Positions 20,218 to 62,784 are shown, counted from the first letter of the stretch. The stretch is DNA of 64,000 bases from Epithemia pelagica (GCA_946965045.2 OX337232.1:3658001-3722000); one strand, 5' to 3'. Notes: generated from the sequence alone by a model not told the origin. Made by a program: numbers and translations.

Positions 20218-21080
20218 GGGTCTTTTATTCCATGTATATATAGGACGAGCACGATGATGATGATATGATGATTATGAGTTGTCGTTTTTTTTTCTCTATT
20301 ACAGATTCTCTGTCGGATTCTCTGGGACCAATCATATAAACGCGACTAAAAGACGTCTCGCCCTTCATTCCCAGCGTCTGTCCATCCCCCTTTCCAAGCT
20401 ACCCGTTCTACTTGTAACCTAGTGATACCTCTAGCTAGGAGTACTCCTAGTACAAGCTGAGTTCAGACAGAATGTTCCTGACGTAGCGCTCCAGTAGGAA
20501 ATCTACGTAATCCGCGCGAGCCATCCCCTTAATATAGCCCTTTTATTTATGCCTCTACCGTTCTACCAAAAATTGACCATGGTGAACGGTCCTTTTGACC
20601 GATCTCTTGCCAAATAGGAGACGGCTCCATGATCCCATGCTCTGAACCTCTTCTCCATTCATGGGTTGAGCATGGAGAACGATGTCGGCGCTGCATTCGT
20701 TTTGTAGGTGTCGTTTTATCTAGTTGAAGGTGGTCGCCGCGCGATTTACTACGGCGACTCACGGCAAAACTTGGTGCAACCAATGCACCTCTATTGTAGA
20801 ATCGAATGATAGAAGATAGAACAAAGACTATGAACACTTGTAGCGTTGTTCACGTCAAAAATTGATATTCTTCTCGTTAGATATATGGAACTTAGACTAG
20901 AAGTTGCGTCGTTCACAACAAAGATTGATGTTCTTTTCTTTGTTGTGACTCACACAGCCGTACCTGAACGCAATGTATTGTACGGTAAACGTAACACAAC
21001 TGTAGAATTAGATCGTATTCATAGAGAATGAAGATCCTACTCAAATGATAATCATAAAACGCTGCTACATTGTTCACTAT

Positions 21081-21653
21081 CTAGGCTTGTTGATGATTAA
21101 AGAAGAGATTTTGAAGCGGGTGCTTGAGCATCATCGCACCAAGCGAAATGTTGAAGCGATCCATATCCTTGCTGCCCATGTAGATTGTAACGACCTGGGG
21201 TTCCATGCAGGCTTTAGGGTTGATGGAGCAGCGTGTGTAGAGGCGGATGCGTCCCATGGGAGGTCCGTTCTTGCTCGTCTTTCCAGAGACCTGGTCCAGG
21301 TGCGACAGAGCAATGAACCCAACTGGAACAACCAACGCTGGTTCCTCATGCTCGCTTGTTGCATCCCGGTCAAAGACTGCAATCCGTAGGTAGTCGGTCG
21401 CAAGCTCCCGCTGCACAAGCAGATGGCCACGGTCGACGATGTTGTGGCCAGTGTCCTTGTTTCTCGACATGGGCCCGATGAGCGCGCAAACATCGCTGGC
21501 ATAAAAGCACGACTTGAACGGGAGACCAGCACCACCCTCACGGCCATCCTCTTCGTTGAACTCGAACTTCGTCCTCATGTTGGTCATCTTGTTTCTTCTT
21601 CCTTGCCTCTTCCTGTCGTCTCTGTTTGATTGTTCCATTGCACGGCGGGTCAT
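21081..21653 (-). CDS. Hypothetical protein (cargo A, 190 aa)
   Basis: ATG-started ORF with GC3-rich codons (LVQRELATDYLRIAVFDRDA…). Divergent from cargo B. No recognised domain. Confidence 0.4.
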   Translation of the reverse strand: MTRRAMEQSNRDDRKRQGRRNKMTNMRTKFEFNEEDGREGGAGLPFKSCFYASDVCALIGPMSRNKDTGHNIVDRGHLLVQRELATDYLRIAVFDRDATSEHEEPALVVPVGFIALSHLDQVSGKTSKNGPPMGRIRLYTRCSINPKACMEPQVVTIYMGSKDMDRFNISLGAMMLKHPLQNLFFNHQQA

Positions 21654-21824
21654 TCGGAAGTTGCTTCATGCTGCAAGTTGATTTTGTGGCGCGCGCCGAT
21701 ATTGTTCACGAATGAGCGCGGGGGGATTCCCTAGATGACACAAGAACGGAGAGCGGGCAACAATCAAACAAACAAACACAACAATCAAACGAACGAATCC
21801 CTATTGTGTTCTCACTTTCCAACG

Positions 21825-22722
21825 ATGCGCCAGACGCGTAGTGCTACCAAACGAGCTGAGTCTGCGAAGAAGGAGCAGGAGGACTCCGCCGCAGCTCCCT
21901 CCACAACCGCATTTCCCTCCGACAAGGGAAACAAGGCAAACAAGAAAATGAAGACAAAGACGGCCGTGGACAACAAAACGTCGAAGAAGAAGAAGACGAC
22001 GACGACGAAGTCTCCCGCTTCGACAAAGAAGCATGTGACCTTCAACCTTGAGGGTCCTTCGTCGTGGCACGAGCGCGCAAAACAGTGGCAACTCACCATT
22101 GGGGATGAAGATGGTATCCCAGTGTTCTTCGTCAGCAACAAGGACGTCGAATGCGCTAACCTGTCGGATATCGCGGCAGAGCTCCTTGCGATCGAGGCTG
22201 TCGGCAAAGAAGGTAAGTTTGATTGTTCATTGTTGGTTTTGAGTCTCCCTTTCTCACGACGCGCCCTCTGCTGCCACAGACACCAAACCCAACAGCAAGC
22301 CCGACAACAAGCCCGACAGCAAGCCCGAGAAGGAGATCAAGAAGGAGGACGACGTCGAGAACAAGACTCCAGAGTCTTATGTGACCCCGAAGAAAGTAAC
22401 TTCTTCCCCGAAGGTGGCGTCTCGAGCTTTCGCACTGACCCCCTCCCAGAAGCATGCTTTCCAGCGTCGGATTGCTGAGGAACAGGTGAAGGAAAGTGGA
22501 GCGACAGACCCTCGCCAGACTTTGAATGAGTCGCTGGCATTGGGAGAAAACATCCCGTCGTCTCCTCCTTTGTTCTTTAGCAATCCTTCCCGTGCATACC
22601 GGACATCCATTGATTCGTATGCCGATGATGGATTTCTCGAGACCCAAGAAGACTTCATCGGTACGCAGCAAAACGGGCTTTTTGGTCCCGATTACTTGGA
22701 TCATGAGGACGAGGCGTACTAG
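21825..22722 (+). CDS. Lys-rich hypothetical protein (cargo B), 2 exons
   Basis: ATG at 21825 (MRQTRSATKRAESAKK…). Intron 22213-22279 (GTAAGT…CACAG, 67 nt) joins in frame to DTKPNSKPDNKPDSKPEKEIKK…DHEDEAY*. Confidence 0.65.
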
Positions 22723-23247
22723 ATATCTACTGATGGACGTTTTAGGTATCCTTAATCACTAAATATGAATCGATTTGTCATCATGGTACTTGTAGTGCTT
22801 CTACAGTCGTTCTTGTTGTGATTATCATTATTGTCGTCGTCCAAGTCCTCGTCATTGTCGTGGCTATCATTGTCGTCGTTGTATTGTAGTCGTCCTTGTT
22901 GTAGCTATCATCGCTCATCCCGTTTGTCCTCTTCATCATCGTTATGGTCGTGATTGTCATGGTCATCATCATCGTCGTCGTCGTCATCCAGCTTCCCAGT
23001 GTCGGTAGTTGGGTCCCGGTTTGCGGGCGCGTCTCGTATGGATGTACGAGGGAGTTCGTGATTGGTCCCAGACGAGCTATGATTCTTATCTCATATTTTG
23101 CGTTTTCGACACTTCATGGAAACAAACACGACAATGTACTAAAGTATAATATGAAGGAATAAACAATAAATCTTAATGTCATACTGCAACTCAACGTACC
23201 ATGGTATTCTTTTTCAACAATAACACACTTTCACCACGAGGAAAGAT

Positions 23248-26136
23248 CTAAGTTTGATCGGCTTCTTTGCTCGCGATCTTCTTACCAGGTTTATAATTCG
23301 CGGCCACAAGCACCTTACGAGGATTGTCACTTAGGACGCAAACACGCTTGTCCCCGACCCAAAGCTTAACCCCAACGAGCCCACTTCGGCGAACACCAGG
23401 GATGTCTTTGTCATGGAAGTAGTAGTCGGAAAGCCTGCTTTCTCCAGAAGGAAGGTTGTAGGTGTTCTTTGGCATGGGATCGTGAACGGTCCCATCTTTT
23501 CCTTGGTACACGTAGAAATGTGCACGTGGATTCCCCATCTCCCCAGTCTTAAAGCCACCAGCATGGACAGTATCTCCTCGAACGAGGAGAAACGTGCCAT
23601 ATGGGATATGTACCACTTTACCCAGCTCGTTCATATAATCCTTGTGCTTCTCACCGCGGAAACTCCACAATTCAACGGACATACCCTCCTCCGCCAGGGG
23701 CATGAAAACAATAAAAGGCATGCGTTCCCGGAGTGGCAGATCTGCATTCGCTCTCCGAGTCTTTTTGATTGGTTGCTTCCCGGAGGGCGTTTTGGGACCT
23801 TCGGACATGTTCCCTGTTACGCTCTGGAACAAGAAGTCGATGTGAGGTTCTTGAACTTTTGCCTCTGTGGTCTTCATGAACGAAAGGTGAATGTTGATTT
23901 GGTCCGCAAATGAATCATCTTTTGCGTAGTTCATCCCATAGAGAGCTGAGGCAAGCAGCTGCTTGAAATTGGCCGTGACCTTTGCAGCATGTTCGGGGTT
24001 AACGTGGCCGAAATACCGAATGTTGGACACCATTCCCTCATGTTCCATCATTGCCATCAACAAATTTGGTGTGTAGTCTTGAACAGATTTGAAAAATTTG
24101 CCCTTTCCTTTCTGGTCCAAGCCTGTGCTGTGCCACGCATTCTCCAACATTTCGAGGAGATCTGGCGGAGTTGTCAAAAAATATCCTCGATACATTTTGT
24201 TTTCAATATCGTACAGCCATTTGAAATACTTCGAGCGCAATTCTCTATGTAACAACTTCATTTCCTCGAAACGCTCATTCTCCTTCGCTTTCGCATCGAT
24301 CGCTTCCATCTCCTCAAAAATACTATCCGTGTCATCTTCTGCCATTACCACTGGTACGAACATTCCAGTACTAGGGCTGGGATTGGCTTGAGTGGCGGGT
24401 TGAGCTTGTGCTGCAGGTAGGACGGGACTGCTGGGAAGGAGCACGGGTTGAGCTTGTGCTGCAGGTGGGATGGGATTGCTCGGAAGGAGGTGGGGTGAGC
24501 CTTCGACCGGCTGGGTCGTGCGTTGTTGTTGCTGCTGATGATGGAGCGATGAAGGTAGAGTCCCCCCGTAACCTCCATAGTTGGGTTGATTGTAGGACGG
24601 AGGATGTCCATGGTACTGCGGCGGAGGATGACTCGTCGGAGGATGAGGATAATGCGGCGGAGGATAAGGATAATGCGGCGGAGGATGATGATTGTACTGC
24701 GGCGGAGGGTAATTGTACTGCGGCGGAGGATAATTGTACTGCGGCGGAGGATGGTGATAATATTGCGGAGGATAATGCGGCGGCAGCTGAGGGGGCGAAT
24801 TGTAGTGCTCAGAAACGTCTTGCGGAGGAGGCGGAGAAGGAAGAGCAGGAGGACGAGCAACAGCAGCAACTGGGCGGAAAACAGTAGTAGAAGAGGTAGC
24901 GAAAGCCTTCTTTGTTTTTTTCCCGTCGTCTTCATTTTCATCACTGGGTCGACCGCGTTTCTTTCCCTCGTCTTCGTCGTCGTCACCTTTCGTCGACGGT
25001 CGGATAACCTGTTCGGAGGACGTCGGCGATTCGTCCGAAAGGTTATAAAACAAAGACAGCTCGTCGCCCTTTTCGATCCGCTTGATTGCCTTGACTAGAA
25101 GATTCGGCATGATTCTCACGTTGTAATGATCATCCGATTCATCCGGTGGATTGTCTGTACCGTACCGATGGTGTAGGTGGTCGTTGATTAAGTGCAGCCC
25201 CATGCCGAAGTGATCGTCGTTGTCTGCTTGAAGCCTTCGATTGTCACGTCCGAACTGAATCGCGTACTCGTTGGGTACACCGAACTGAATCGCGTACTCG
25301 TTGGGTACAACTGTCCGAGACGTGACGTCGTTTCCCGTGTACGCACCAATCACTTCACCATCTTTGATTGTCCGAGCTGCAAAAACGCCAAACCCGGCGC
25401 CTGGGAGTTTTGACTCCTTCACCTCAAACAGAAGCACTTTTCCAAGGTAGATCTTGACTACCGGATTGTTCGCAAATGTGTAACCGACATGCTTGCCGAT
25501 CGGGAAGGTATGTTTTCTGTTCTTCTTGACAGAGAGACCCATTCCACTCGAAAGTGGCACAATCTTCCCCTTTTGCATGCCAGAACCGGGCTTCCGAATT
25601 GGAGCTTCTTGGACCGAAAAAGTGGCCGAAATCTTCCGTGAGACATACTCTCCCATAGCACAGGCAAGTACAGCACTGTCTTTGATCTTGGAGAGCGTCT
25701 TGAGGCCTTCGGTGAATTTCCTGATTGGATCCCGTCCAGAACGAGAAGGGAGTTTCTCCACTTCCTCGATGCCTTTCTTGTAGTCCTCTGTGCGCGTATC
25801 GATGAGGAGCTGCCGCATTTGAGTTTCCGAATACTGTTTGCTGTGGTCCTTCTCTGGATGGCCACGCCGAACATCTGCAAGCTTTTTATCCTTCACTTCG
25901 GCAAAGTCTTGATCCGAAAGAAACCGATGGTGCTTTGTTGTTGTCGCTTCGTCTGTTGCTGCTGCTTCGGGTGCTGCGGCTGCTGCTGCTTCGGGCGCCG
26001 CTGCTGCTTTGGCTGACTGCTCTTCCGCTGCATCTATTGCAAGTATAAGAGCGTCAAGATTTCCTTTGTCACTCATGCTGTCTCGTTTTTGAGCGCCTGC
26101 TTTTGAATACTGTTTCTTAGGGCTTGGTTTCCCCAT
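23248..26136 (-). CDS. SET domain + C-terminal 2OG-Fe(II) dioxygenase fusion protein (cargo C)
   Basis: Minimal SET domain (VKESKLPGAGFGVFAARTIKDGEVIGAYTG…LHLINDH…VKAIKRIEKGDELSLFY). Pro/Tyr/His-rich linker. DSBH motifs QEPHIDF (HxD), FIVFMPL, VHIPYGTFLLVRGDTVHAG (distal H) and NPRAHFY (R). Likely ATG at 26136. Confidence 0.8.
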   Translation of the reverse strand: MGKPSPKKQYSKAGAQKRDSMSDKGNLDALILAIDAAEEQSAKAAAAPEAAAAAAPEAAATDEATTTKHHRFLSDQDFAEVKDKKLADVRRGHPEKDHSKQYSETQMRQLLIDTRTEDYKKGIEEVEKLPSRSGRDPIRKFTEGLKTLSKIKDSAVLACAMGEYVSRKISATFSVQEAPIRKPGSGMQKGKIVPLSSGMGLSVKKNRKHTFPIGKHVGYTFANNPVVKIYLGKVLLFEVKESKLPGAGFGVFAARTIKDGEVIGAYTGNDVTSRTVVPNEYAIQFGVPNEYAIQFGRDNRRLQADNDDHFGMGLHLINDHLHHRYGTDNPPDESDDHYNVRIMPNLLVKAIKRIEKGDELSLFYNLSDESPTSSEQVIRPSTKGDDDEDEGKKRGRPSDENEDDGKKTKKAFATSSTTVFRPVAAVARPPALPSPPPPQDVSEHYNSPPQLPPHYPPQYYHHPPPQYNYPPPQYNYPPPQYNHHPPPHYPYPPPHYPHPPTSHPPPQYHGHPPSYNQPNYGGYGGTLPSSLHHQQQQQRTTQPVEGSPHLLPSNPIPPAAQAQPVLLPSSPVLPAAQAQPATQANPSPSTGMFVPVVMAEDDTDSIFEEMEAIDAKAKENERFEEMKLLHRELRSKYFKWLYDIENKMYRGYFLTTPPDLLEMLENAWHSTGLDQKGKGKFFKSVQDYTPNLLMAMMEHEGMVSNIRYFGHVNPEHAAKVTANFKQLLASALYGMNYAKDDSFADQINIHLSFMKTTEAKVQEPHIDFLFQSVTGNMSEGPKTPSGKQPIKKTRRANADLPLRERMPFIVFMPLAEEGMSVELWSFRGEKHKDYMNELGKVVHIPYGTFLLVRGDTVHAGGFKTGEMGNPRAHFYVYQGKDGTVHDPMPKNTYNLPSGESRLSDYYFHDKDIPGVRRSGLVGVKLWVGDKRVCVLSDNPRKVLVAANYKPGKKIASKEADQT

Positions 26137-26548
26137 GGTCGAAACGCAAAAACTCGAAACACGAAACACAAGAAACACGAAACGCAGCATTCTCCTCAGC
26201 CCTCAGCTCACATTCCAAAAAAAAAATCTTGAGCTCACATACTAAAAAACGGTGAAGTTTTGGTATGTGGGCTGAGTTACTTAAGGATTTGCGTGCCAGT
26301 TTTGCGATGCGTGCGCGTTTTCGGAGAGGGAGGCGTGTTTCGCGCGAGGTCTGCTCCGAAAATCGTCCATTTTCTCGCTCTCTCACATTTTCGAGGTACT
26401 TACAAACTGATAATCCAACACGCAACACGAGCACGCAACACGGAAGTGATCATTGATACCAATAACTGACAAGAAATACATTCAATAAAATGGATTGCTC
26501 TTATAAATAGTTAAGTTACATGCATTTTGATGATAAATGGAGATTAGA

Positions 26549-29500
26549 TCAGGTTTCTACTGCGCCAGATCCTTGCGTTTCTCTCCAGAGACGTGAGATG
26601 AAGCCATGATCTTGGTCGAAGGCGGATCGGTGACACTTGATTGCTTTTGACATCTTTTCAATTTCGGCATACGAGAGGCCCGCAGCTGCATAGTCTCTGT
26701 TGTTGGAATTTTGATCGTATAACAAGTACGCGAGCATATAGCGACGTGCCTTTGCTGACATTTTCCGCATGATTTCGGGTGTTGTTTTCTTCAGGCTCGC
26801 TGTCAAACATCGTAAAAAGGCAGCTTTGTCTTTCTTCTCATTCAGTGAGAAAGCACGAAAGACTTTTTTTGAGTAACCCCAGCCATACTCGATCCCCTCA
26901 CCGGCCATTTCACAGTGATACTTGGTCGATACGAGAATCTCGATCCTGCAACGATGTCGTTCAGACAAGTCTTCCGCCAGCTTCTCCATTGCAGATTTTT
27001 CGTTCTTGAAATCGGAGCATTCGCTCATCAGATGAACCATAGAGTACTTTTTGTAGTCCGCCTGATAGGCTTCTTTCACAGTCTTCTTATCCGCTTCCAA
27101 CCATGCATCTCTGGTTGTCTTGACGTACTTGATCATGTTGTTAGGGTCTATCCACCCCCGCTCCCATAACACTTGAAAGAGCCCTTTTGCAGCATTCATC
27201 CAGCCTTCCTCGATCACGTCATCTTCAATCACCGTTGCAATGTTGGAGCGTTTACAAAGGTCCTGTAGTTCACCAGCATTTTTCGATTGAAATGAACGTT
27301 GCATTCCAGGTCCCATGACCCGGACAAGTTTTGCCATGAGCTCCTTCTTTGTGAGGTTGCGCTTTTTCTTTCTACCAGTTCGGTGTGTATTCTTCGATGC
27401 GACACGCTGCGCGTCATTGAGACGATGGCCTTTTTTAGCAACTGGACCACGATCGTTCTCCTGATAGACGAGGTGTTGTACGTCACCAACTCGTAGTTTG
27501 TCGTCATGGTTGTACGGGCCAAGGCAAGCTTGATCAATAATTTGTGTGTCCCGCATGCTGGGAACAGCTCCTCCCCAGTCGTTATTCATGTTCAGAGCAT
27601 TTAACCCATCGGATTGTTGTTTTCCATGACCACTGCTTTGGTCGAACAAAAAGACAAAGTCATGGGCGGGGAACATGACCACGAGGCAATCGACAATATC
27701 CTCCAACTGCAAGGCCATGTATTCATAATTCCAATATCCCTCTTTATCTGCTCCGTATTCAAAAAAGCGAGTGAACGGTTGGGCATTGGTAATTGGAGTC
27801 TTGGCAGTGTGACCATTGAGGTTCACTGCAGCCTCGGTAGAGACGTATTTGTTGTGTGTCGCATGTAGACGGAGTTCATTAATCCAAAATAGACTCGCAG
27901 CAAGCAACGGGTTTCCGTTCATAAGGAAGCCCCATGATCGGCTTACAAAAGCGCTGATCATCATCCCATGTCCATCATCCTTTGGCAGCATTTTAGTTGC
28001 GCCATCTTTAGTGTACCATGCCTTAGACGAGAAGGAAAACTGCTTGTAGATCGGTTCGTCCTGGCCGATGAGGATGACAGGTTTGCGGTCGGAGGGAAAC
28101 CTGTGTGACAAGTTTCCATTGTGAATTGTGTTTTCTGGTTTGATGTACCGTTCAAATTCGCTTGGGAAGGCATCAACATGGTACTCCCGCATCTGCTTGC
28201 CTGTTGTTACATCAGTGTACTCAAATACAAAGCTGTTTGGCAAGAGCTTCTCCTTGCCCGCATTCCCTTCGTTTTCAAGTTTGATTGCATCCTCGGTAGG
28301 GAGCTGCACCCACCGATACGACAGCTCTTCCCACTTAAAGTACTTCTTGACAAAAGCAGCTCTGTGGGCAACATTCTCAGCATTTTCGTGTCGATCAGTG
28401 AAGTATGTTTTCGTGTGTTCCTTGAACACGAGCCCTGCAGCAGCAATACATCGCCACGCTGTGCTTTGCAAAATGGTGGAAAGCTTCATCGATGCCAAGA
28501 AGGCCTCGTACGATACTGGCGTTGCATTCGTATCCATGCACTCTTGTACGATCATGGTATGCATATCCGGAAGCAATGTTGTCCTCAGGTACATTAGAGC
28601 AGACTCTGTTGTAAGAGTGCTCAGGTTTTCCTTTGCCCAGCATTCAAACTTTACCTTTGCTTCAGGTATGTGAACGAATAAGACGGGCGATGGCTCTTTC
28701 CCAATATGAACGTGGTAGTTGGGATGAGGGAAACTGTCGTTTTCCCGAAAGTACCTGTGAAAACGAGCAATGGTCTTGGGATGTTTTTTTACTTTTTCAC
28801 CATAAATCTGTTCCATTTTGCTAATGGCTTCGCTTATGCAGTTCAGCCATGTACGACCGTGTGGCATATCAAGCAACGCTATCTTATAAGAAAGTTGTAA
28901 ATACGTTGCCTTGAGCAGTACCCTCTGTTGCTGTTCCTGGTTGAGGGGGAAGATGTCTCCCTTGTTAACCACATTCGGAAGTGCCTCCACGTTGGAAATG
29001 GCCCTTTCAAGGGTTTCTATCCATCGCTCAAGATTTCGTTTTGACGATCCTGGAGAATCGCATTTGCCGGCAAAGAGCCTACGGTTCCTTGGCTCATCAA
29101 AATAGGCCCTTTCCATTTGTTGCGATAGACCTTGGATCATCTCACTCTCGAAAACTGAAAAACCAATCGGCAAACTCTGTGGATGGTCATGGCCAATTTC
29201 GTCTGTGGCCAATTCAGGATGTTGGATTGCTCCAACAAGCACCTGATTTGTGTTGTCGTGAGGTGGTGACGTTTGCATTTCGGTAGGGCTGTCTCCAATT
29301 TGTGGCGGTTGACCATGTTGCTGCGTTGCAGTGCTCTTGATTGCTGGTGGAGTTGAAGTGTTTCTTGCTTGCTTGGATGTATTTAGCGTGCCTTCACGCA
29401 ACCCTGGTGACTCTTTGTTCCTTCGCTTCGTTGGCTTCGCTCGTCCCGACCGCCGAATCATATTCTCGTCTGCAGCCTCCAGCCATTCTTGATGATCGTC

Positions 29501-29893: not shown

Positions 29894-30409
29894 TGAGGGT
29901 GGTTCAAGTAAACCCTAAAGCGTCCGGATGCAGCTCGGCAACAAGGTACGCGGTTGGGATGGCCCTCCACCATGGTCGTTAGACAACAACCGTTTTTTCA
30001 TCATTTTCGACGGAATTCTAGCGTTCGGAAGCTGTCACACATCACGGTACGAATAAAAAAATTTATTATTCAGACACTGGGTTGTCACGAGTCGGACACT
30101 TTCATTCACTAGTCAGGCCAAACGCTATTGAGGATTATATTTTATGGTACTAAATCTACGAGGGGTCTACGTCAGGAACATACTCCCTGAACTCAGCTTG
30201 TAGGAGTAGATCTTTGTGTCCTTTGTGGGGTTTGTCCGACGCAACTTTCACTATAGATCGAAACAAAGTGTGCCAACCCAGAAGAGAATGGAAGAGAACC
30301 CACAAGTGCATACACAAATCGTGTCGAGCCCAAAATAGGTCTTGTTGTTGTGTCGCTGTTCTGTGATGCAAGCCACCACAAAAGCAGAACACATTTGTCG
30401 AGGATCGCA

Positions 30410-31778: not shown

Positions 31779-31897
31779 ACGAGAGGCTCTTCTACTCCAG
31801 TTGCTTCATCCCAAAGCAAGCAGCAAGAAAGCAAGCAAGAACACATTCAACACGGCATACGAGACAACTACACAAAGCAGCAGAGCAGAGGGACAGG

Positions 31898-49474: not shown

Positions 49475-50162
49475 GGAACCAAACGAGTCCACACGACAAG
49501 TATCATCGTCGTTTGTGTGTTTGTGTGTTGGGGTTTGGGGACTTCTACGACTTATCCTTAGGACTGGTCTTATCATCAGTGAGAAATATCGCCGTGGAAT
49601 GACGTGGACTCCAAAAAATTGCGGGTCGAACTACCTCTCCTTTTTCAACTACAATCGAAGTTGTTAACTTTGGAGTGAACTCTGGGTCATCTATGAAGGA
49701 CGAGATTGCGTCTTTCTCACGAGATTTGTTGGTCTCACAAACATCACCGTCTCTGCTGCTGTAGGGCAAGGTTGATTGGCCTGTAACTTTTGCCCATACC
49801 CACTTAACGCCATACGTAAGGGAGCAGTATATATACTTATCCCATAAATTCGAGCAGTATATACACTCCTCCCATAACTTTGAAGACATCTAATAATTGG
49901 AATATAGATGTCATCAGCTTTTTGACAGGTCAGTCGAATTTATCACGGAATTTTGAACATTTCTATATATCATAGTCTACACTGATTTTCCAATCCTACT
50001 CACTGTTCCGTCGATCAAAGATTGGCCACTTTCGCTCATTTTCCGCCTCCCTCGCCAGAGGTGCTACTTCGACGACCTCTATCTTCATCCACATTTACTT
50101 TGCACTGGCACCACTCTCCATTCTGGTCTGTCATATACTGAACAAGACACATTCCTAAGAGC

Positions 50163-53100: not shown

Positions 53101-53528
53101 ATGGTCTCACACCAAGGCACACAAGAACACGACGAGCACGGAATGATAGGCGAATGGAACAACGGCAACAACAACAACAACAAAGTAACGCTGCACTGCA
53201 TGACGAAGAGCAAATGCAACAAAAGCGAGGAAGAGCTCGTCTGTCACAGAATGGGATGGACTCTGACAATGACTTAGACGAAAGTGACGACAGAGAGGCC
53301 AACAGCTCATCACAGGTAGCCAGATCAAAAAGACCAAGACGATCATCCCGTCCAAGAAATATTGTTACCCAAACACAACAAGATTCAGACGAAAGTAATG
53401 ACTTGGACGATGAGACAGACAACGACTATTCGGATGGTGACAAAAGTTCATCGGACGAAGAGAACTATGAAGAATTATATGCCTCCAGTGAGGGAGAGGA
53501 CGTTCCCTCTATGACAGATACCATATAG
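50163..53528 (+). CDS. piggyBac transposase (1121 aa)
   Basis: DDD triad DLAFDEGG, HVAMDNRYT, MGGVDNGDQM. KWYKK..LGILDVMLLNSYI. C-terminal Cys-rich CAVC…CVKC…H. Intact ORF. Confidence 0.92.
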   Translation: MSSQASAVPGETQTSESVKSPNLLVDSSQPSQGEPPPHVPVQRSRFSYAKKKLIAPHTFWLDRNYLDRFSETFPRCDARTPLHMDGQVVSCPTSKNGQVYVIVWNQLPHPNLNSQWVRSHFKSSPYVKNMLKEYILDFVYPGKQSSPQRKKPPPNQENPMTEPNNTRPIDSQRVTMQDDTRAVTQTDRPHLPPAKKAPPNPNEDDDDSSVSSGQLIPQSQLPSTTERAQRRAQLKTATEEDTSPAIGNSSGRSNNQQGEDTTPTHAVGPQQPARLFGSGNTTDTGVTSRASLRSDPPNQNVSSDSESEDEEDNARTFEEHTDRPENVLDEDRRSEADDEEETEDDEAANNQKEQTTIREMMNALVFSYQETPLSQQASHWIGNDANHRSMYSGPDGLKDNVAENFSNPFECLQYVGGLSMDVIAHIANSTNDYFHQRIEPNLPRKRTYYHSQKWVDVSIEEMVRFLGLILMMSLRPVDAGGYAAHFQTTNRVYNIGMAHPVIEIKDSAGWASKYMKLGRFRQIRGAFHLDEKSSQRGGDKCYQLRKILTAVNAGSKRSFRVPRDLAFDEGGIGCRSRYCPVRQYNKDKPQKFRVDFFILSSSSTYAILHIDVYQGKNPTNSYIKKQARQLPTTMKAVVNACYALQLHKRTDGYRHVAMDNRYTAPRLAVVLRDRLRLFSTGTCRANRKGWDSKRLNLKKDRTNRGESLLFHDPVNGLIFGQWVDSKVVNFVSSYEDVGSGTVRRQVGQNKEEFLCPVPLIRYQMTMGGVDNGDQMRLQFGGFGTRVKFKKWYKKAALGILDVMLLNSYIAWNLSSSDRPRARRIKLTRFGYYTIVAQQMCEFVAPMEVDALGRRVSTNTGRRVCENGHFPVPVDPNKQIGCAVCLLEYRWRKDKLKMTGLHSNVGTCVKCGITAHLVHCGHKKQQGWHIHNLPEFDKLTCFEIVHSEHGRQMFVQNHPSSRYKYSIRKSHPLMVQLREMHGLTPRHTRTRRARNDRRMEQRQQQQQQSNAALHDEEQMQQKRGRARLSQNGMDSDNDLDESDDREANSSSQVARSKRPRRSSRPRNIVTQTQQDSDESNDLDDETDNDYSDGDKSSSDEENYEELYASSEGEDVPSMTDTI

Positions 53529-53587
53529 ATAAAAAAGAACTTTCACTTAGTAGTCTCCATTGCATATATTACTGTGAATGATACTTC

Positions 53588-54280
53588 TTATTCTTCTTCC
53601 TCATTACTGGGACGAAAGCCAACGTAGGGTTCGGAGGTGTTTTCATTCGGAAAATTGTCCCGAATGAACTCAACAAGGCAGGGAGGAAGCTCCCTACGAA
53701 CTCCACGCCCAAGTGGACCATGGATTTTGTTTGTCAAACGCCGATACAATTGGTATCGGATGGAACGATTGGATTGCCCGGTATTCTTTAGGTGACTCGC
53801 GATGGAATGAAGGTAGGGGAGGTGTTCAAAGATAAAACAGGGGTTTCTCTTGCATGTGGAGCAAACATGCTCCCAATACATGTATCCATGTGTTGCACTT
53901 GGGGGCGTGTTGTTATTCAGCTCGTGAAGGATCCGTTCAAGGCTTTCCGGACATGCATACTCCAACGGCATGAAACGAGTCTCCGTGCATTCTGGTTTCG
54001 TTTCAATCACACCACCACTGTCATCCGTGACCAGGGTGTTCGCCCTCTGAAGGGTAAACGGAACATACTCCTCTTGGTTTGTTGGGTTGTAGAACTGATC
54101 GGTGTCGATGGTGAGGTCTGTGAAAGAAATGAATGAGGCTGATGAGGTGCAGATGGACAAATATAGATACAACGATGGTGTAACGCAATAAGCACTCGGG
54201 GAACCCACCATCTGTTGCGTCCATCTTGTAGAGGGAAGTAGTGCGAATGTTTCAGCAAGGTAGATCCAATAAAGGGGCAA
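53588..54280 (-). CDS. Accessory protein with P2X7-ballast/KolX-like C-terminal motif
   Basis: CSTCKRNPC followed by RYQLYRRLTNKIHGPLGRGVRRELPPCLVEFIRDNFP…YVGF. Convergent with the transposase (59-bp gap). Start uncertain. Confidence 0.6.
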   Translation of the reverse strand: MPLYWIYLAETFALLPSTRWTQQMVGSPSAYCVTPSLYLYLSICTSSASFISFTDLTIDTDQFYNPTNQEEYVPFTLQRANTLVTDDSGGVIETKPECTETRFMPLEYACPESLERILHELNNNTPPSATHGYMYWEHVCSTCKRNPCFIFEHLPYLHSIASHLKNTGQSNRSIRYQLYRRLTNKIHGPLGRGVRRELPPCLVEFIRDNFPNENTSEPYVGFRPSNEEEE

Positions 54281-54619
54281 TGACAGTGGTGAACGACCGC
54301 TTCAATGGTCTTCACTGTGATGAGTGCAACAGAAATGACATTCATCTGAACTTAAAACGACTACTTTTCAAACCGTGTTAAGATGGGAGTAGTTTATGGG
54401 AGTCAAAGTACTGATCCCATATTTTTTATGGGAGTAGTTTATTTTCTACTCCGTTACCCTTAAAACCCGTTCCTTACGTATGGCGTTAAACAGCATGTCA
54501 GCGTTCGCTTTTTGAAGTGAAAGTGCAATAAGCCTATACTACCTAGACATTTCATTATCAACCGGTCCACCAACCTCCTCTTCCCCTTAAATCATATAAG
54601 TCTAACGTTCACTGTCCAA

Positions 54620-55115
54620 TTACGTGCTCATGTAAGTGGACATGTCAATCTCATCCGGAAGTTCAGGAATGTTGACTTCGAAACGTGACTGGACTTTGTT
54701 GAGGATCTCTTGGTCGGGCTCCGGACTAATAAAGGAGATGGCGATTCCCCTCGTTCCAAATCGACCTGCACGTCCGACACGATGCAAGAACTGGTCTGAA
54801 TCATCGGGAAAGTCATAGTTTATCACAACATTGACACGTTCAATATCAATACCACGTCCAAACAAATCGGTTGCCACCAAGATGCGGGCATTGAACTCTT
54901 TGAAGGATTTGTACTGAGAAATCCGCTCTTCTTGTTTCATCCCCGCATGAATGCAAATGGAAGGAAAGTTGCATTCCGTCAATAACCGATTCAACTCCTT
55001 GGCACGAGCGACCTTTGAAACAAAAATCACCACTTGATTAAACTCGAGTGCATCGAGCAAGTCGTTCAGTTTTCGGTTCTTTTCTGCCTCGGCAAGTTTG
55101 GCATAAAGTAGATTA
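54620..55115 (-). pseudogene. UAP56: Orphan C-terminal half of UAP56/DDX39 (Sub2) DEAD-box helicase
   Basis: [29 protein letters not shown]…[16 protein letters not shown]…[46 protein letters not shown]…DMSTYMST. No N-terminal DECD domain anywhere in the window. Confidence 0.9.
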
Positions 55116-55846
55116 CGGATCCCTGATGACATCTGCCCATATACTATGATTTAGATCCATATCATGTTTATTAGATAACTGAATGTCTAACAACTTATCT
55201 AATATAAATTTATCCGAATCACACCAGGAATCGCGAACCACACCCTGAACCACACTCCGAACCACACCTTTTTAGATCTCCCCCTCGGATCAGGGTTGTG
55301 AAGTACGCACACTCACACCTTGTACTTGACTACTAGTCCTTAAGTACACTAAAACTAGTAGCTGTTACTTTACTCTTAGTACTTTAAGTACGTCTAATGA
55401 AAGCATGTACTTTTCTTGTGATACTTACAAGATTAGTTGTCTGTGCTGATTAATTAACGTACTTAACTTTAGATAAGTAAGTACAACAATCTAACCAGAC
55501 TTACTTTACTTAGCAAAAGTATCTGTTGCCGATACTGTGCTGGTACTTTAATATCAACAAGTACCACATCATGAGAGTTTCCCTCGCCTTACTTACTCCA
55601 AGTAAGTACCTTGCTGTCTAACCCAAAGTACTTAATTTAAAACATTAAGTACGTACTTTCAAGTAATCAAAGTACCTACTTCACGCATCAATTTATCACT
55701 TACCTGTTACAGTCTGTTACATACTACTGCTCTCCAAGCTCCAAGGTACAAGTGCAGCGTTCAGTGCAGTGCATAGTGCATCCTGTGTTCCTTGCCCAAT
55801 TCCAATCCCATTTTCCAATCCAAGTAATGAGACATCCCCATTCACC

Positions 55847-57574
55847 ATGTCGATGGATTCTCTCATAGATGACAATTCTCTTCTGCAATTCACATCAACT
55901 TGTCACATCGAGTGGTCTCTGTCATGCTGTGACTCATATTCTCTTTTCATTGCGGACAGTATTACTTCATGCATTCTGGCTCCGCACGAGGAACAATTAC
56001 ATGCGGTTGTTACTGCCTCTGCCTCCTGGCTGAACCGTAATCAGCATTCGATAAAACTTCAGACTCTCTCGGAATGTCAAGCAAGTCACCATTGTATTAT
56101 ACCCAGATTTTCTTTCGAACAACTCCTTTTTCAAGTTAGCTCCCTTATTCTCCAATGGCTCAATGGAACAGACGAACACAACCTTATTTCCATCACATCA
56201 CATGACGAAACAACCGATCTTTATCTTGAAGTAAAATGCACACCGAAGTTCTCAATCTCCCCATGTATGGGTTGTTCCCAGTGCACCTCCTTTGTCATTG
56301 ACGAAATCAAGGAATATCCCGACGACTCTTTGCTGAGTATTGTTCTTGCATGGATACAGCGCAATCAAGCCCAATTCGTTGTCACTGATACCCTAACAGG
56401 TGTCTCCACTGTTCCCAACTCAATTGAAACGGTAATGGAAATTCTACTGAATTATATATCGGAAAAGATAACTCAATTACCGACTCCACCAGACCCCCTA
56501 AGCACACCACCCGTGTCCATCCAAGATGTATCCAAAAAAGCCTCTGACGATTCCACCACATCCTCATTATCTCAATCCACGAACTCTGTGCAGAATACGA
56601 AAACATCTTCTCCTAAAAAGCTCAGTCCATCCCGCCACAAGTACCAAACTCGGAAACAGAATTCTTTACTTTCGAGAGAAATCATTCTTGGGTCAAAATC
56701 TCGCAACAAAGTACAATACAATGATGGGAAAGGACCACGTCGGTTCATGCATGGCGACCCATTCAAAATATCCCCAAGTCGCATTACATGCCCGAATTTA
56801 CCACTCCGGCCATCCGCAACAACTATCGCAGATCGAGAAGCTTTCCTTGACGAACTACAAGCCTTCCACAACGTGCTTAAAAGTTCTGGACTCCATTCTC
56901 CTCGTGATGCCTGGGAAGAATGGATGGACATGGTGGCAGGTGATGACAAACTAGCGGACAAGGCCTTCATGTGTCTCATAATCATTCTTATGAGCTCGAG
57001 TACAACAGACAGTCAATTAGCGGCATTCATTCCCAAAATATTCTCTGCCGGTGTTACCTCCGCTGATGGTGTTCTCGAAGTGGTAGATCGCATTGGAATT
57101 GACTCCTTTTGTGCACTAATTTCTCCAGTTGGCCGTTTCCATCAAAATGCCGAAAGGATTGTCCATTCGGCATCGTACTTTGTCACCAGATATAACGGCA
57201 GGATCCCCAAGGACATATCCATACGAGAGTTGACCTCCTTGTTTGGAATTGGATACAAGACAGCACAAATTGTTGTATCCACTGCATTTGACCGAATAGA
57301 TGGCATCCCATCTGACGTCCATGTTATGCGTTGGTGCGAGGCACTGAAATGGACACCACCACTTTCAAACGACGGTCTACTCTGTTCGAAGTGCATAGAA
57401 CAATGGCTGCCTCCATCAAAATGGGGAATAATCAATCCCCTGTTTGGTGGAATTGGTCAGCTGATACAAAATCCGGAAAAACGTCCGCAATTGCTAGCAT
57501 TATTGGACGAGAACGGCTCTGACATGCTACAATCTATGATTCGCCTTATTCTGAAAGCTTACGGTAAAGACTAA
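55847..57574 (+). CDS. HhH-GPD (endonuclease III/Nth-like) DNA glycosylase with long unknown N-terminal region
   Basis: LIIILMSSSTTD, ISPVGRFHQNAERI, RYNGRIPKD, HhH LTSLFGIGYKTA (Lys at the lyase position), GIPSDVHVMR (catalytic Asp), WLPPSKWGIINPLFGGIGQ. No C-terminal 4Fe-4S Cys motif. Likely ATG at 55847. Confidence 0.85.
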   Translation: MSMDSLIDDNSLLQFTSTCHIEWSLSCCDSYSLFIADSITSCILAPHEEQLHAVVTASASWLNRNQHSIKLQTLSECQASHHCIIPRFSFEQLLFQVSSLILQWLNGTDEHNLISITSHDETTDLYLEVKCTPKFSISPCMGCSQCTSFVIDEIKEYPDDSLLSIVLAWIQRNQAQFVVTDTLTGVSTVPNSIETVMEILLNYISEKITQLPTPPDPLSTPPVSIQDVSKKASDDSTTSSLSQSTNSVQNTKTSSPKKLSPSRHKYQTRKQNSLLSREIILGSKSRNKVQYNDGKGPRRFMHGDPFKISPSRITCPNLPLRPSATTIADREAFLDELQAFHNVLKSSGLHSPRDAWEEWMDMVAGDDKLADKAFMCLIIILMSSSTTDSQLAAFIPKIFSAGVTSADGVLEVVDRIGIDSFCALISPVGRFHQNAERIVHSASYFVTRYNGRIPKDISIRELTSLFGIGYKTAQIVVSTAFDRIDGIPSDVHVMRWCEALKWTPPLSNDGLLCSKCIEQWLPPSKWGIINPLFGGIGQLIQNPEKRPQLLALLDENGSDMLQSMIRLILKAYGKD

Positions 57575-57620
57575 GTTGGTTGAATGTTCATTAAAATACT
57601 ACTTTAGTTCTTCACTGGTG

Positions 57621-60600
57621 TCAATGTTTTTCCTCGTCGTCTTCATTGGTCTCCTCATCGTCCTCATTGGAGTCGTCGTCTCCCACCTCCTCTTCTTCTT
57701 CCTCCTCATTGGCATCCTGGAACTCCTCTTCTTCCTCTTCATCCTCATTCTCCTCATGCTCTGAATTTTCATCTTTATCGTTATCTGACAAGGCATCAAG
57801 CAATCTACGAGAGAAGTTGCTCTCTTTTTCCATATTGTCCGATTGTTCATCGCTCCGACCTGATTGAGTCAATCGTTGTTTGTTCTCTTTCTTCTTCTTC
57901 TGTCTAGGAGACCGCCTCAATTCTTCGCTTCCTGATGACCTTTTTCTCGCTGGTGGTGGATTTGTCTTCTTTGTCGTTGACTTGGAACTGGATGTTGTTC
58001 TAATTTTGGACTGCTTGGCCTTCTTCTGACTCGAAGTTGTTGGTGTTTGGTTAGCCTTCCTCTTCTTCTTTGACCCGGATTCAGGTCCTGCCGTATCGTC
58101 CTTTTTTTGGCTCATCGCTTTTCTCTTTCGTTCCTCGACTGCTTGTTTCCTTGATCTTTCTAGTGATTCAAGACGGTCCATTTCTTCCTGTAGATGAACT
58201 GTGATGGCTTCATCTGTGTCAATGTCTTCTTCGACATCACTTTCCTCATTGTCATCACTGACATCAGACAAGTCCAATGATACTGGCTGTATGTCGTCTG
58301 CTGGCATCGGTACTGTGTCGTCGTTGTTGTCGTCTCCCAAGTCTGGATAGTACTCGTACACAGGTTCCGGTGTGCTACTTGCGAGAATATCGGTCGGCGG
58401 ATTTTTCTTTGCGTTGAAATCTTCCAATTCTTTAGTCGCTTCCTTCAACAACATGTTTCTCAGATATTCTGCCTGCTCTGTGTTCTCGAACAACTGTGGA
58501 GCCCGCTTCTTGCCAGGACCCGAGTGTGTTTCTGCCCCAATTTCTGTCGACGGCAAACTTGTTGCATCTGGATTGTGTTCGTCCGCTACCGAAGGTGCTT
58601 CATTCGCTGTTGTGTTTGTACCGGTGGCATCTTGCCTTGTTGTTGCTTGGTTGTCTCCCCCCTCTCGCGAGTCGTTTCCGATCGTTTCATTAGTAGTATT
58701 GCCATTGTTATCGTTGTCTTCGTCGTCCTCAATGACAATCACATCTTGTTCCTTCTTTTGATTTTCTAAGGCAATCTCCCTTTGAACAATATCCAATCGG
58801 ATTTTTCGTGTCAGCTTCTCCATCGCCCTCATCTCGAAGTTCTTGGCGGTAGTTTTGGTCTGCAACTTGTTTTGTTGAAACCACGAACCAAGGGAAAACA
58901 CACGCTCTTGGAAGGCGTTTGTGGCGGGCTTCGTGAGCCATATGACAGCTGTTGGGAAGACATGTTGGTAGTTGTCCTTGTTTTTCTCCCACCATCCCAT
59001 GACGTCGAAATACTTTCCCACAACAAGGAAATCTGTATCTTGGCATGCCGCAATGAACTGGGCTTTTTCCGGCCCTTTCCATTTCTTGGACTCGGTAGTG
59101 TATGCCTCAGTGGGGTATTTAGTGATCGCCTCTTGCCATCGACCATCGATTTCTCTTTTACATGCACGACGGAAATCTCGGAGACTATCTTCGCATGTTT
59201 GTCTCAAGACCTTGGCCACACGTGCTTCTTCCTCAGCAGCAGACGCCTTACCAGTAATGTTCAATAATGCTCTCTCGTTCAGTTCCTGAGATTCTCGAAA
59301 GTTGCGGAAAGCATTGAACTTTTTGAACGGTACATTTGCAGTTGGAAGAGAGTTGGTCTCTTGCGTCGTATTGCTTTGGGTTGTAGGAGTGCTGCTCTGT
59401 TGTTGTGTTGCCATCAACGAACCAATTCTGGAGTACGACTTGTTCGAGAATTTTTTGATCATGTCCCTGAGAAAAAGTTCCTTCACACGGGCGCCATCGT
59501 TCTGATCATACACTCCCAATGATTGGAAGAACTTAACAAAGATGTTCGTCATCAATGGATGGGCCATAAGAGCCTTTTCGGAGTCATCATTGATGGAACC
59601 ACCATCGTCGCGGACTCTACGCCGTTCCGCCAACAAGGTCTTGAACTCAGCAATGATACGTCGAATAAGAGTCCGTGGACCTGCTTTCAACTCCCCAAAA
59701 GACATGGGATCCCGTTGGCGATCTAATTGGGAAATGGTTATGTCTCCATTCCATCGTTTGTTGACTGGTGTTGTAAGTTTCACTGGAAGACAACCAATGG
59801 AATTGACTGTATTCTTCATTCGATGAGCATAAGACCGAGCGAGATAAATTTGCATTAGGGCAGCGGAAGAGGATCCTGGTTCGTCGGACTGAATGGAGAT
59901 GGAAACCTCCTGTAGTACGACCAAGATTGCCTCGTATTGGGCCAGTGTTTCCCATTGTTCCTGCTGTGGATAACTCTCTTTGAAGTCAGGGTCGGTACCA
60001 AAGTGACGTGAGGCGTAGTCGTCAAAGCACCATTTGTTCCTCAACAAATACTGGATGGTAAGCACACATCCAGAAACACGTGTTTCATTAGGTAGCGGAA
60101 TCTGGACTACGCTTTGGTTCATACGTTCCATTTCTGTGCGAACAGTATCAAACCGGTGGTTTGCCTTCTTGGACATCAACCACGCTGCAAATTTTTTGAA
60201 AACTGAGTACAGCTCCACAAAAGCCTTGTTGTCGTCCACCACTCTCTTATCTCTCGTCCGGACAACCAACCCTGTGGCGTGTTTCAAGACCAATTCGGCC
60301 TTATGCATGTCGCATTTGCCCACATTGGACGAACCCGTTATATATTTCCCTGCAAGCACAGCCGAAGCCGTGTTGTCGTTGACGGACGAGCAGAGATCAC
60401 TTTTGTGAAAGCCCACTGTCTGTAGTAAAGAGTGAGTCAGTCGCGCAACTTGTACAGCAGTGTGACCTTTAGTCTGTGCCAAACCAATTGGGATGCGATA
60501 CACGGCACAATTGCGAGGATCACAGAACATGACAGTGACCCCAAGTACATCGTACTTCTTAGCCTGCCACACATCATGGCATACAGTGGCGAAAGGGATT

Positions 60601-61459
60601 TCCTGTCGGCAAACCTTTTTGTAGTGTTGCCGGACACGGTAGGAAAGCTTGGACACTGTTCTGATGAAATCTTGATACGAAGCAACACGCATGGATGTTA
60701 CTTCGCGACGACTGATCACCTCAGGCCTGGATTCACGAAGAAGATTTGCATTTTTGATAGCAAAGTCGATCATCTTGCGGAACTCTGGCTTCTCCACAAT
60801 AGAAGCGGGTAGACAACAGTCGTTGACGCACTGGTATATGTGTTGCTGCATTTGTTGTCGAATGTTTCTCTTCGTGATCATTCCAGATCCATCGCCACGA
60901 TACATCGTCATTGTCGTTTGCGTCGGACTAGGTTGTTCTGGTGCGTTCGGATCGTCCTTTGTTCCTGGGATGACGAAGTCTTTGTGCTTTCCGTCAGTAT
61001 GCTGTTTTATATTGGAGGGCTTGCCGGTCAGCATGACAACTGCATTAGACAATGGAGTCTCTGGGTCCTTCATACACAACGGGCATAGAACACATCGCTT
61101 GGCAATGAAGGAAAACGGAGTTTTGTAGTCGTCTTTGCTGCTGAGGCTTGTTCTTTTTGGGCAGCCTTGAAAGCTTCGTTGATGCGTTGGAAACCTTTAT
61201 ACATGGTCAAATTCTGTGGATCGTGAGAACTCACAAAGGCCGAGAACTGTACCCAGTCAATGTGGACAGCAAATTTCCAAAGGGGCGACACATTGTGATG
61301 TCCAAAGTGGTCGGAAGGTAGCTCTTGACATTTGGGAACAATCTCCTTTTCTTGTAGGATGAACGACCGGAGAGACTTCTGTTGTGCAGCAATTACTTTC
61401 TCCGATTTCTTTCTCTCAGCATCACGGTCAGCTTTCTTTTTCTTTTGACGGATGGGCAT
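57621..61459 (-). CDS. hAT transposase with BED-like finger, apparently frameshifted near the N-terminus
   Basis: Motifs VCHDVW, VNDNTAS, CDMH, NETRV and ATNAFQERVFS. BED-like CVLCPLC…SNIKQH. The N-terminal segment from ATG 61459 (MPIRQKKK…PLWKF) is one base out of frame with the main ORF, with the switch at ~61110-61190. Confidence 0.85.
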
Positions 61460-61471
61460 GATGATATAATG

Positions 61472-61653
61472 ATTGAAGGAAGCACTGATGGACAAGAGAG
61501 ACTTGTTGCTGTTGTTGTAGATTATGAGAGGACAACAAGTTACAAGGGACCGAGAGGCAACAATTGAAGGAAGCACTGATGGACAAGAGAGACTTGTTCC
61601 TGTTGTTGTAGATTATGAGAGGACAACAAGTTACAAGGGACCGAGAGGCAACA
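61472..61653. repeat. 91-bp tandem duplication upstream of the hAT transposase
   Basis: attgaaggaagcactgatggacaagagag…gggaccgagaggcaaca at 61472 and 61563, with one mismatch. Confidence 0.9.
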
Positions 61654-62784
61654 ACATTCATCCATGTTGGCATGAGACATGGATTGAAAGATATAGGTGC
61701 AAGCGAGTTTTGGAGATGAATGAGAGAGTGGAGAGGCTACTTGCTCCATACTGTGATGTACTTATGGACTTAGAAGTAGATATATACAAATAATAGTACT
61801 TACCGATAGAGCTTTAAGTACGAAGAGAGGTGCTAAGGTACTTGATAGGGGTACTTAAGGTGCCGGTGAGGAGTAATGGTACTTGATAAGGGTACTTAAA
61901 GGATGAGGGTGAGGGAAGTGGTACTTCATTAAGGGTACTTAAGGTGGAAAAAAAAAGAGACGGTACTTGATGAAGAAGGCCTTGCGAAAAGTAAAGGAAT
62001 TGGTATTGATCGAAGGGACTTGGACAAAGGCAAAGGCAAAAGTACTGAAAAAGTACCGTTTTGGCGAAAAATGGGTACTTGGTACTTCACAACCCTGCCT
62101 CGGATTGCTCATTGTATTATACTCGTAATCGATGTTGCAGAGAATTAGATGACTGCTATGCTAGACCGGCTTGCTGGACTTTATCGAGATCTTCAGAAAT
62201 GTATATCTCAATGTCCGTCCAATGAGACGACCAGTGAGCAAGTAAGACTGCTGTCATGATTCATGATGGGTTGGTCGTAATACAAAGGTCATCAACAATA
62301 ATTAATTTACGACCAACGGTTTCCTCTAGAATGACCCAAGGCGTCAAACGCAAAACAATCTTTGTTGGTCCTTTGGGATGCGGAAACGCTCACAAATTGG
62401 TTCTCACATTTTTTGGAAAAGGACTCACACCGACTACACCGCAAGGAACCAACCATACCGCAAAATGGATGTTAAAAAACGAGGAGTCAATATCCCCGAC
62501 AGTGACTTGCCTGCTGAGAAACCAAATATTTCCTTTGAGAATATCAGGACAATGACATTGCGACAGCTGATGGGTATGTTGGATTCAGTTACGGACATGA
62601 GTAAATTATGCAGGATCAAAAAAGCAATCGAGTTGAAGAGAAGATGGGAAGGATTAAACAAGGCGAAGAGAAGATCCTCCTCTTCGACGAGTCGCGCATC
62701 CTCTTCGACGAGTCACGCAACCTCTTTGACGAGGAAGAAGAAACCGAACCAACGTGTGTTGGATTCCACGCAACCCGACGGTGA

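Follow-up and report, generated by a model that had tools for sequence, protein, structure and literature searches.

Only a few systems are known in which transposons counter epigenetic silencing by their host: that of VANC in Arabidopsis and, inferred rather than shown, that of TET/JBP on elements of fungi. VANC, a product of the Arabidopsis VANDAL/MuDR elements, counters the silencing of its own elements (Hosaka 2017, as cited in PMC12730594). TET/JBP is encoded by fungal DNA transposons of 11 lineages, in groups that include KDZ, Plavaka, hAT, Harbinger, IS3EU, EnSpm, and Helitron, and is read by the author of that work as a means of escape from silencing (Kojima 2025, PMC12730594). In Phytophthora, SET histone methyltransferases are encoded by transposons of the HarbingerS and MuDR families (Repbase Reports 2014, as cited in PMC12730594). 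The KolX proteins of Kolobok (Kol0) transposons have the fold of the P2X7 "ballast" (Kojima and Bao 2022, PMC9587614), and KolX-like proteins without most of the seven cysteines are encoded by a few piggyBac families, one of a red alga and one of Phytophthora (piggyBac-2_GrCh and piggyBac-14_PI) (PMC9587614). Here we analyze a stretch of 64,000 nucleotides (C5:3658001-3722000; the window) from a probable diatom, in which three multicopy transposons that have terminal inverted repeats (TIRs) as well as target-site duplications, a TA-flanked element that we call E1, a piggyBac element, and a hAT element, each enclose at least one gene in addition to the transposase. Searches of the own genome covered a 60.5-Mb, 23-contig assembly. 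On balance, we lean towards the view that these are three recently active cut-and-paste transposons of different superfamilies, that each lineage has for a long time had at least one further gene that serves the element, and that the predicted modifying enzymes among these genes have the roles proposed below.

How does this locus compare with the described systems? As with the fungal TET/JBP transposons, unrelated superfamilies in one organism group carry a modifying enzyme, here a predicted one, inside complete elements with TIRs and target-site duplications. The host is a diatom rather than a fungus, and in place of TET/JBP there are a SET-oxygenase fusion and a glycosylase of endonuclease III type. 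The hAT element and its glycosylase look like an ancestral pair that has diversified together, unlike the fungal enzyme genes, which pass between superfamilies. E1 has in common with the Phytophthora elements a SET gene on a stramenopile DNA transposon; as far as those elements are described in the citing paper, E1 is set apart by its TA-flanked superfamily, which resembles IS630/Tc1/mariner (ITm), and by the fusion of SET to a probable oxygenase. The TET/JBP transposons of fungi and the SET transposons of oomycetes are closer precedents than VANC (PMC12730594), the model put forward in the original prediction for this DNA. As described in the citing paper, VANC is sequence specific and belongs to Mutator-type elements, and its likeness to the elements studied here is one of strategy only; because VANC is not an enzyme, the analogy is purely conceptual. 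Both the piggyBac element with a KolX-like gene and the general idea of anti-silencing cargo have already been published (PMC9587614, PMC12730594). In a literature search that did not extend to Repbase Reports, we found no published hAT transposon, or any other, with an endonuclease III-like glycosylase and no published SET-oxygenase fusion on an ITm-like element.

The accessory genes are very probably long-standing, selected partners that serve the elements carrying them. They hold their position and orientation beside transposases that have diverged to 40 to 60% identity. For each family, 40 transposase matches were scored genome-wide for an accessory match within 3 kb. A glycosylase-like partner accompanied 35 of the 40 hAT transposase matches, which are 39 to 100% identical to the window protein, and was convergent in every case; a 36th match has been parted from its partner by an insertion. 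Likewise, 29 of the 40 piggyBac transposase matches have a KolX-like partner, all convergent, and 29 of the 31 KolX-like matches in the genome, most of them without internal stops, adjoin a piggyBac transposase match.

The accessory genes are also as constrained as the transposase cores. The proportion of nonsynonymous differences (pN) is 0.126 for the glycosylase core and 0.123 for the hAT transposase, with a proportion of synonymous differences (pS) of about 0.7 to 0.8. Measured against a family at 73% nucleotide identity, pN is 0.092 for the C-terminal domain of the KolX-like protein and 0.088 for the piggyBac core, with pS again at about 0.7 to 0.8, a saturated value. Moreover, the hAT accessory gene co-diversifies with its transposase: separate trees of seven transposase/glycosylase pairs agree in three pairings, each with full support, and in one long outlier. 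Provided that three sister pairs are resolved in both trees, 105 pair sets are possible, which by our own arithmetic puts the probability of a chance match at roughly 1 in 105. Transposase and glycosylase of the hAT element are best read as a two-gene transposon design of long standing rather than as a capture.

These data bear out what had been proposed for the window, namely that three DNA-transposon superfamilies carry accessory genes and that two of these genes lie tail-to-tail with the transposase at a distance of 46 to 59 bp. All three elements are multicopy and have the accessory genes inside their TIRs and target-site duplications, and the gaps are 46 bp in the hAT and 59 bp in the piggyBac element. 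Since many diverged families pair the accessory genes with their transposase, these genes are no haphazard, decaying selection of host genes; they are intact in most copies and constrained, not mostly pseudogenized. On these data, the "cargo" genes are a stable part of how transposon lineages are built and not accidental.

The hAT element (55291..62097; 6,807 bp) is flanked by an 8-bp duplication, CCTCGGAT, at 55283-55290 and 62098-62105 and has perfect TIRs of 16 bp, CAGGGTTGTGAAGTAC, which start with CAGGG. There are four further full-length copies that are 98 to 100% identical. The transposase gene (57621..61576, minus strand) matches Pfam PF05699 Dimer_Tnp_hAT with 26 bits against a cut-off of 21.4. 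In the window copy it is split by a private 16-bp deletion near 61131 into frames of 1,152 (57621-61079) and 168 amino acids, which were searched separately without joining them, while the other copies have a single frame of 1,335 to 1,354 amino acids. The window copy is therefore probably not autonomous, though both ends and the second gene remain intact. Just upstream of the deletion lies a 91-bp tandem duplication (61472-61653), perfect to 99%.

The second gene of the hAT element (55769..57574, plus strand) is an open reading frame (ORF) of 601 amino acids with a likely start near residue 29. Its frame is open in 5 of 6 close copies, and at least 73 genomic matches were scored, mostly uninterrupted frames of about 600 to 690 amino acids. 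The ORF contains a glycosylase core (56951..57463, plus strand) with the helix-hairpin-helix (HhH) motif GIGYKTA, which includes Lys497, and with Asp516. Both residues are invariant in eight paralogs of 33 to 64% identity and align with the NTHL1 motifs that contain the catalytic Lys and Asp of that enzyme. A profile made from four sequences matched human NTHL1 (E=5e-21) and bacterial endonuclease III (E=3e-13) and, weakly, the G-T mismatch glycosylase 1kea (E=0.17); the match to Pfam PF00730 stayed below its cut-off (20.2 versus 26.2 bits). The protein is thus predicted to have, probably, all that a bifunctional HhH glycosylase/apurinic-apyrimidinic (AP) lyase needs. With NTHL1/endonuclease III and DEMETER/ROS1 it shares the HhH-GPD architecture, the hairpin Lys, the downstream Asp, and the bifunctional type. 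It differs from NTHL1 and endonuclease III in being transposon encoded, in having an extra, family-specific N-terminal region of about 370 amino acids, which shows no similarity to the hAT transposase, and in lacking the [4Fe-4S] cysteines, and it has no detectable specific similarity to ROS1/DEMETER. A word-based protein search with the glycosylase recovered only its own cluster or close paralogs, and a metagenome scan with the glycosylase alignment, for which the search patterns were drawn from the family-specific region, yielded no relative.

E1 (20453..30200; 9,748 bp) is the TA-flanked TIR transposon. The longest inverted repeat of the window pairs 20444-20497 with 30156-30209, and the true ends, 20453 and 30200, were placed by aligning other copies. 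The TIRs are imperfect and start with CAAGCTGAGTTCAG; the end reads show TA adjoining each end, at 20451-20452 on the left and 30201-30202 on the right, and TA precedes all 12 ends examined in other copies. The genome contains at least 16 full-length copies with 92 to 99% identity. E1 has four ORFs, of which the largest (26549..29893, minus strand; 1,114 amino acids) is the transposase and is intact in most copies. This protein has no Pfam match and no sequence match in the PDB. Its protein-language features point to a diatom cluster and to DDE_3 (IS630/Tc1-mariner) clusters of the Atlas (score 0.92, 188 shared features), and most of its Atlas neighbors belong to the Bacillariophyta, consistent with a diatom as the probable host. 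We conclude from the TA duplication and the DDE_3 features that E1 is probably of the ITm kind. The earlier designation of E1 as ITm-like is thereby made probable but, given the lack of a Pfam match, not proven. ISL2EU elements likewise make 2-bp duplications and offer an alternative placement.

The SET-oxygenase gene of E1 (23248..26190, minus strand) lies 358 bp downstream of the transposase gene on the same strand and encodes 980 amino acids with a SET domain, a Pro/His/Gln-rich linker, and a probable Fe(II)/2-oxoglutarate (2OG) oxygenase. The reading frame is intact in 10 of 10 copies read, with all indels in-frame; the window copy has a private in-frame tandem duplication of 30 bp inside the SET domain, at about 25249-25308. 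The SET domain (residues 266 to 383; 25042..25395, minus strand) matches Pfam PF00856 with 30.3 bits against a cut-off of 22.4 and gives weak matches to PR/SET domains and EZH2 among PDB profiles. Compared with the canonical motifs NH(S/C)xxPN and ELxF/Y, the alignment shows GDELxLFYN with the Tyr retained.

There is a good likelihood that the C-terminal module (residues 640 to 930; 23401..24273, minus strand) is a Fe(II)/2OG oxygenase. The predicted active-site residues are His783, Asp785, His876, and Arg889; seven paralogs show no change in the HxD motif, the distal His, or the Arg, and in them the Arg/distal-His block follows about 90 to 105 residues further on. The features of the module lead to the "2OG-Fe(II) oxygenase" and PhyH clusters of the Atlas, and weak matches to FtmOx1 that span the distal-His motif (E of about 0.8) also favor a PhyH-like oxygenase. 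The module has no Pfam match to any 2OG family, Tet_JBP included, at an E-value of up to 10, and word-based protein searches found only its own cluster or close paralogs. The putative oxygenase looks PhyH-like rather than like JmjC or TET/JBP, with no sign of either. Paralogs of the fusion elsewhere in the genome, 44 to 48% identical, have kept both the SET block and the C-terminal block. A combination of SET with a TA-targeting transposase also occurs in SETMAR, the primate fusion of a SET gene with the Hsmar1 mariner transposase. SETMAR is a domesticated single-copy host gene, whereas E1 is an active multicopy element in which the SET gene and the transposase gene are separate.

In a mosaic E1 subfamily (L036 and L041; for example C16:642850-648800), the left 2.8 kb is 99.7% and the SET part 98% identical to the window copy, while the oxygenase part has only about 72% amino acid identity and a synonymous divergence (dS) of 0.35. 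A diverged oxygenase next to a near-identical SET part and flank indicates that the oxygenase module has been swapped between lineages by recombination. One paralog of the fusion (926 amino acids, 44% identical; L033, C9:1353000-1362999) lies beside ORFs of 448 and 492 amino acids that could not be annotated. This locus is bounded by inverted arrays, at least 1 kb each, of tandem units of about 193 bp, and no transposase was recognized in the 10 kb read.

The other two ORFs of E1 have no known domain. ORF A (21081..21653, minus strand; 190 amino acids) is open in 8 of 8 copies, and ORF B (21735..22478, plus strand; 247 amino acids), which is Lys-rich, is open in 9 of 10. Because the flanking noncoding DNA is equally conserved, copy-to-copy ratios of nonsynonymous to synonymous divergence (dN/dS) in the young E1 families are uninformative for both, and we judged constraint on a diverged relative on C7 instead. 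The transposase of this relative is 61% identical, and all four genes are present in unchanged order. ORF A has 61% amino acid identity to its C7 counterpart, with a pN of 0.23 and a pS of 0.54. The conservation of ORF B is recognizable only over a core of about 70 amino acids, which makes its coding status less certain.

The piggyBac element (49808..54485; 4,678 bp) has 14-bp TIRs and lies between TTAA sites at 49804-49807 and 54486-54489; on both sides TTAA is followed by CGCCATACGTAAGG. The segment from 49802 to 54489 is a single unit with a 99% identical copy on C2, and an empty paralogous site on C17 has a single TTAA with otherwise identical flanks. The transposase (50163..53528, plus strand; 1,121 amino acids) matches Pfam PF13843 DDE_Tnp_1_7 (E=1.2e-45). 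The convergent accessory ORF (53588..54280, minus strand; 230 amino acids, likely start at Met24) is intact in both close copies and resembles KolX and the P2X7 ballast. A family defined by its C-terminal 90 residues has 723 relatives in a profile search of 1.8 billion representatives, and 22 of the 50 best relatives match PF20478 P2RX7_C (best E=4e-6), so the description of this ORF as ballast-like was correct. The direct match of the family to PF20478 is weak (E=0.073, one family member), its profile found nothing meaningful in the PDB, and a word-based protein search with the ORF returned its own cluster or close paralogs only. The two environmental relatives inspected lie on contigs that are too short to show a transposase or that carry an unrelated neighboring gene. 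The family conserves four cysteines (C140, C143, C148, and C201) and not the seven zinc-binding ones. Like the published KolX-like proteins of piggyBac elements, the 230-amino-acid protein is the product of a second ORF of a TTAA-targeting transposon, is related to the C-terminal ballast of P2X7, and has few cysteines. What sets it apart is the new host group, a diatom, and a large radiation: a single genome has at least 29 transposase-KolX pairs. The genome also contains at least 10 short elements in which a 222-bp match to the left end of the piggyBac element (85 to 89%) and a 142-bp match to its right end (83 to 95%) are about 600 to 800 bp apart; these MITE-like (miniature inverted-repeat transposable element) derivatives, for example C5:1345000-1345817 and C16:1371760-1372578, have neither gene.

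How could the accessory genes serve their elements? We hypothesize that the hAT protein would be an active enzyme of the endonuclease III/NTHL1 type, a bifunctional glycosylase/AP-lyase that takes out a modified or damaged pyrimidine, most likely 5-methylcytosine (5mC) or its oxidized or deaminated product. Base-excision repair would then put back plain cytosine, which would delay methylation-based silencing or mutational decay of the copies. The SET-oxygenase fusion may benefit E1 by changing lysine marks, whether these are on chromatin or on a different protein; it could be a writer or an eraser of such marks. The piggyBac protein would be a KolX/ballast-fold cofactor common to TTAA-targeting transposons, and a part in transposition or in its regulation is more likely for it than the rewriting of chromatin. 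When the diatom P. tricornutum loses DNMT5a, its DNA methylation is depleted and young transposons escape repression (PMC9998398), so a selective pressure for such functions exists. Diatoms are an independent eukaryotic lineage in which DNA methylation represses young transposons, and the families described here are large, young, and intact, one a hAT with its own predicted base-excision enzyme and the other ITm-like with a SET-oxygenase fusion.

The original prediction went further and proposed a general epigenetic countermeasure. The SET and endonuclease III-type domains agree with this for two of the three elements, but the piggyBac protein has no known link to chromatin. A common epigenetic countermeasure is a tentative reading, less likely than not, for the hAT and E1 genes, and less probable again for the piggyBac gene; one function of this kind shared by all is unproven throughout, although two of the three genes make it plausible. 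It is unlikely that the transposons of this diatom jointly encode a toolkit for DNA demethylation and chromatin resetting, in which the hAT glycosylase would excise 5mC or its oxidized forms and the SET-oxygenase would rewrite histone lysine marks under one and the same pressure. If this were the case, the hAT glycosylase would be a base-excision "demethylase," the first one encoded by a transposon, and the convergent acquisition of such genes by several superfamilies would reflect the pressure from methylation-based silencing.

Several points weigh against the proposed roles. All functional steps are ones that we infer from sequence. The closest relative of the glycosylase, NTHL1, is an enzyme for oxidized pyrimidines; the Fe-S cysteine cluster is absent, with no conserved Cys in the aligned C-terminal segment of the eight paralogs; and the PDB matches with E-values of up to 1 include no ROS1/DEMETER chain, although the PDB content was not checked for such a chain. 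By our own reading of the alignment, the SET domain has "ND" (LIND...) where canonical enzymes have "NH." Structure models of the oxygenase module from the single sequence and from the seven-paralog alignment reached a mean predicted local distance difference test (pLDDT) value of only 34.6 and 36.1 and were unusable, which leaves the fold unconfirmed, and the weak matches across the distal-His motif are to FtmOx1, a PhyH-type enzyme that acts on small molecules. The KolX-like protein has no known role in chromatin (PMC9587614). Ratios of observed to expected CpG are 0.80 to 0.99 in the elements and 0.94 in the window as a whole; they do not separate the elements from host DNA and are not informative. 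Lastly, all relatives of the glycosylase and of the SET-oxygenase come from the own genome or from one other assembly. That assembly includes the SET-oxygenase protein in identical form and is probably from the same or a very close organism, and we rejected its P0003 locus as representing a second species.

The accessory proteins might instead be cofactors of transposition without a role in silencing, involved in complex assembly, target choice, or the processing of ends and gaps. We would liken them in this case to the Myb-like protein of Harbinger, MURB of MuDR, and TnpA of CACTA, and interactions between accessory proteins and transposases are indeed documented for Harbinger, CACTA, and MuDR (PMC12973397). 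The tight, conserved convergent pairing with the transposase and the equal constraint on both genes fit such a role, and an AP-lyase or repair enzyme is plausible at excision or insertion sites. Two superfamilies that target TTAA but are unrelated, Kolobok and piggyBac, have KolX-type proteins (PMC9587614), which hints at a function in transposition itself. However, the hairpin-mediated excision of hAT elements has no evident step for a base-excision glycosylase, and a partner was not detected for 5 of the 40 hAT and 11 of the 40 piggyBac transposase matches. The existence of short end-only piggyBac derivatives means that the KolX-like gene is not needed in cis. To our knowledge, hAT and piggyBac transposases function alone elsewhere, which also counts against a cofactor. 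Taken as an account of the accessory proteins, this explanation appears doubtful to us, if worth keeping in mind.

A narrower explanation concerns the glycosylase only, which could be a self-repair enzyme that protects the hAT element from mutational decay by acting on T:G mismatches from deaminated 5mC and on oxidized pyrimidines and leaves the methyl mark untouched. The closest solved relatives, NTHL1 and endonuclease III, both act on oxidized pyrimidines, the weak match to the G-T mismatch glycosylase 1kea (E=0.17) points in the same direction, and the catalytic Lys and Asp are retained. A diffusible enzyme, however, would repair the whole genome and bring the element only a diluted benefit, unless it is directed to element DNA by its N-terminal region, which shows no similarity to the transposase; we regard self-repair as improbable. 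Could the extra ORFs simply be fragments of host genes, captured by chance as in Pack-type elements and without function for the element? Gene capture does happen in this genome, since the outer element around the piggyBac element contains a host-like DEAD-box helicase fragment (54620-55132). The conservation data already contradict this explanation, to which we give almost no credence: full-length ORFs persist in dozens of families that have diverged, pN is much lower than pS, the orientation is fixed, and the hAT transposase and glycosylase trees are congruent. The predicted enzymes of the hAT element and E1 are compact and have identifiable catalytic residues, which makes the hypothesis of modifying enzymes directly accessible to biochemical assays and to expression in a diatom that can be transformed.

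Some further features of the elements and of the window deserve mention. Across the genome, the convergent transposase and accessory frames of the hAT and piggyBac families are usually separated by only about 50 to 140 bp, which may let their 3' ends overlap or one terminator serve both. Convergent transcription of these pairs could be a source of small RNAs. The window has a guanine-plus-cytosine content of about 48% throughout. The region from 20 to 62 kb is a nest of mobile elements, and an adaptin gene at 2249-5281 is the sole clear host gene noticed in the window. To the right of E1, a segmental duplication joins 30631-32151 with 32868-34796 in four blocks that are 87 to 95% identical and offset by about 2.2 to 2.6 kb; the ORFs of this local duplication (30631-34796) have no Pfam match. 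A Copia-type long terminal repeat retrotransposon on the minus strand (40404-46650) has an RVT_2 match and a weak rve match, and its terminal direct repeats (40404-40516 and 46538-46650) are 99% identical. The outer TIR element that hosts the piggyBac element spans approximately 46839..55282 and has 40-nucleotide inverted repeats at 47112-47151 and 55234-55273. These repeats consist of GGTGTG(A/G)TTCGG units, and a further similar copy lies at 46850-46887. The helicase fragment inside the outer element is C-terminal (Helicase_C, E=3e-29). Copies of the outer element on C17, where it is uninterrupted, and on C18 differ in content, and an E1 copy is nested in the one on C18.

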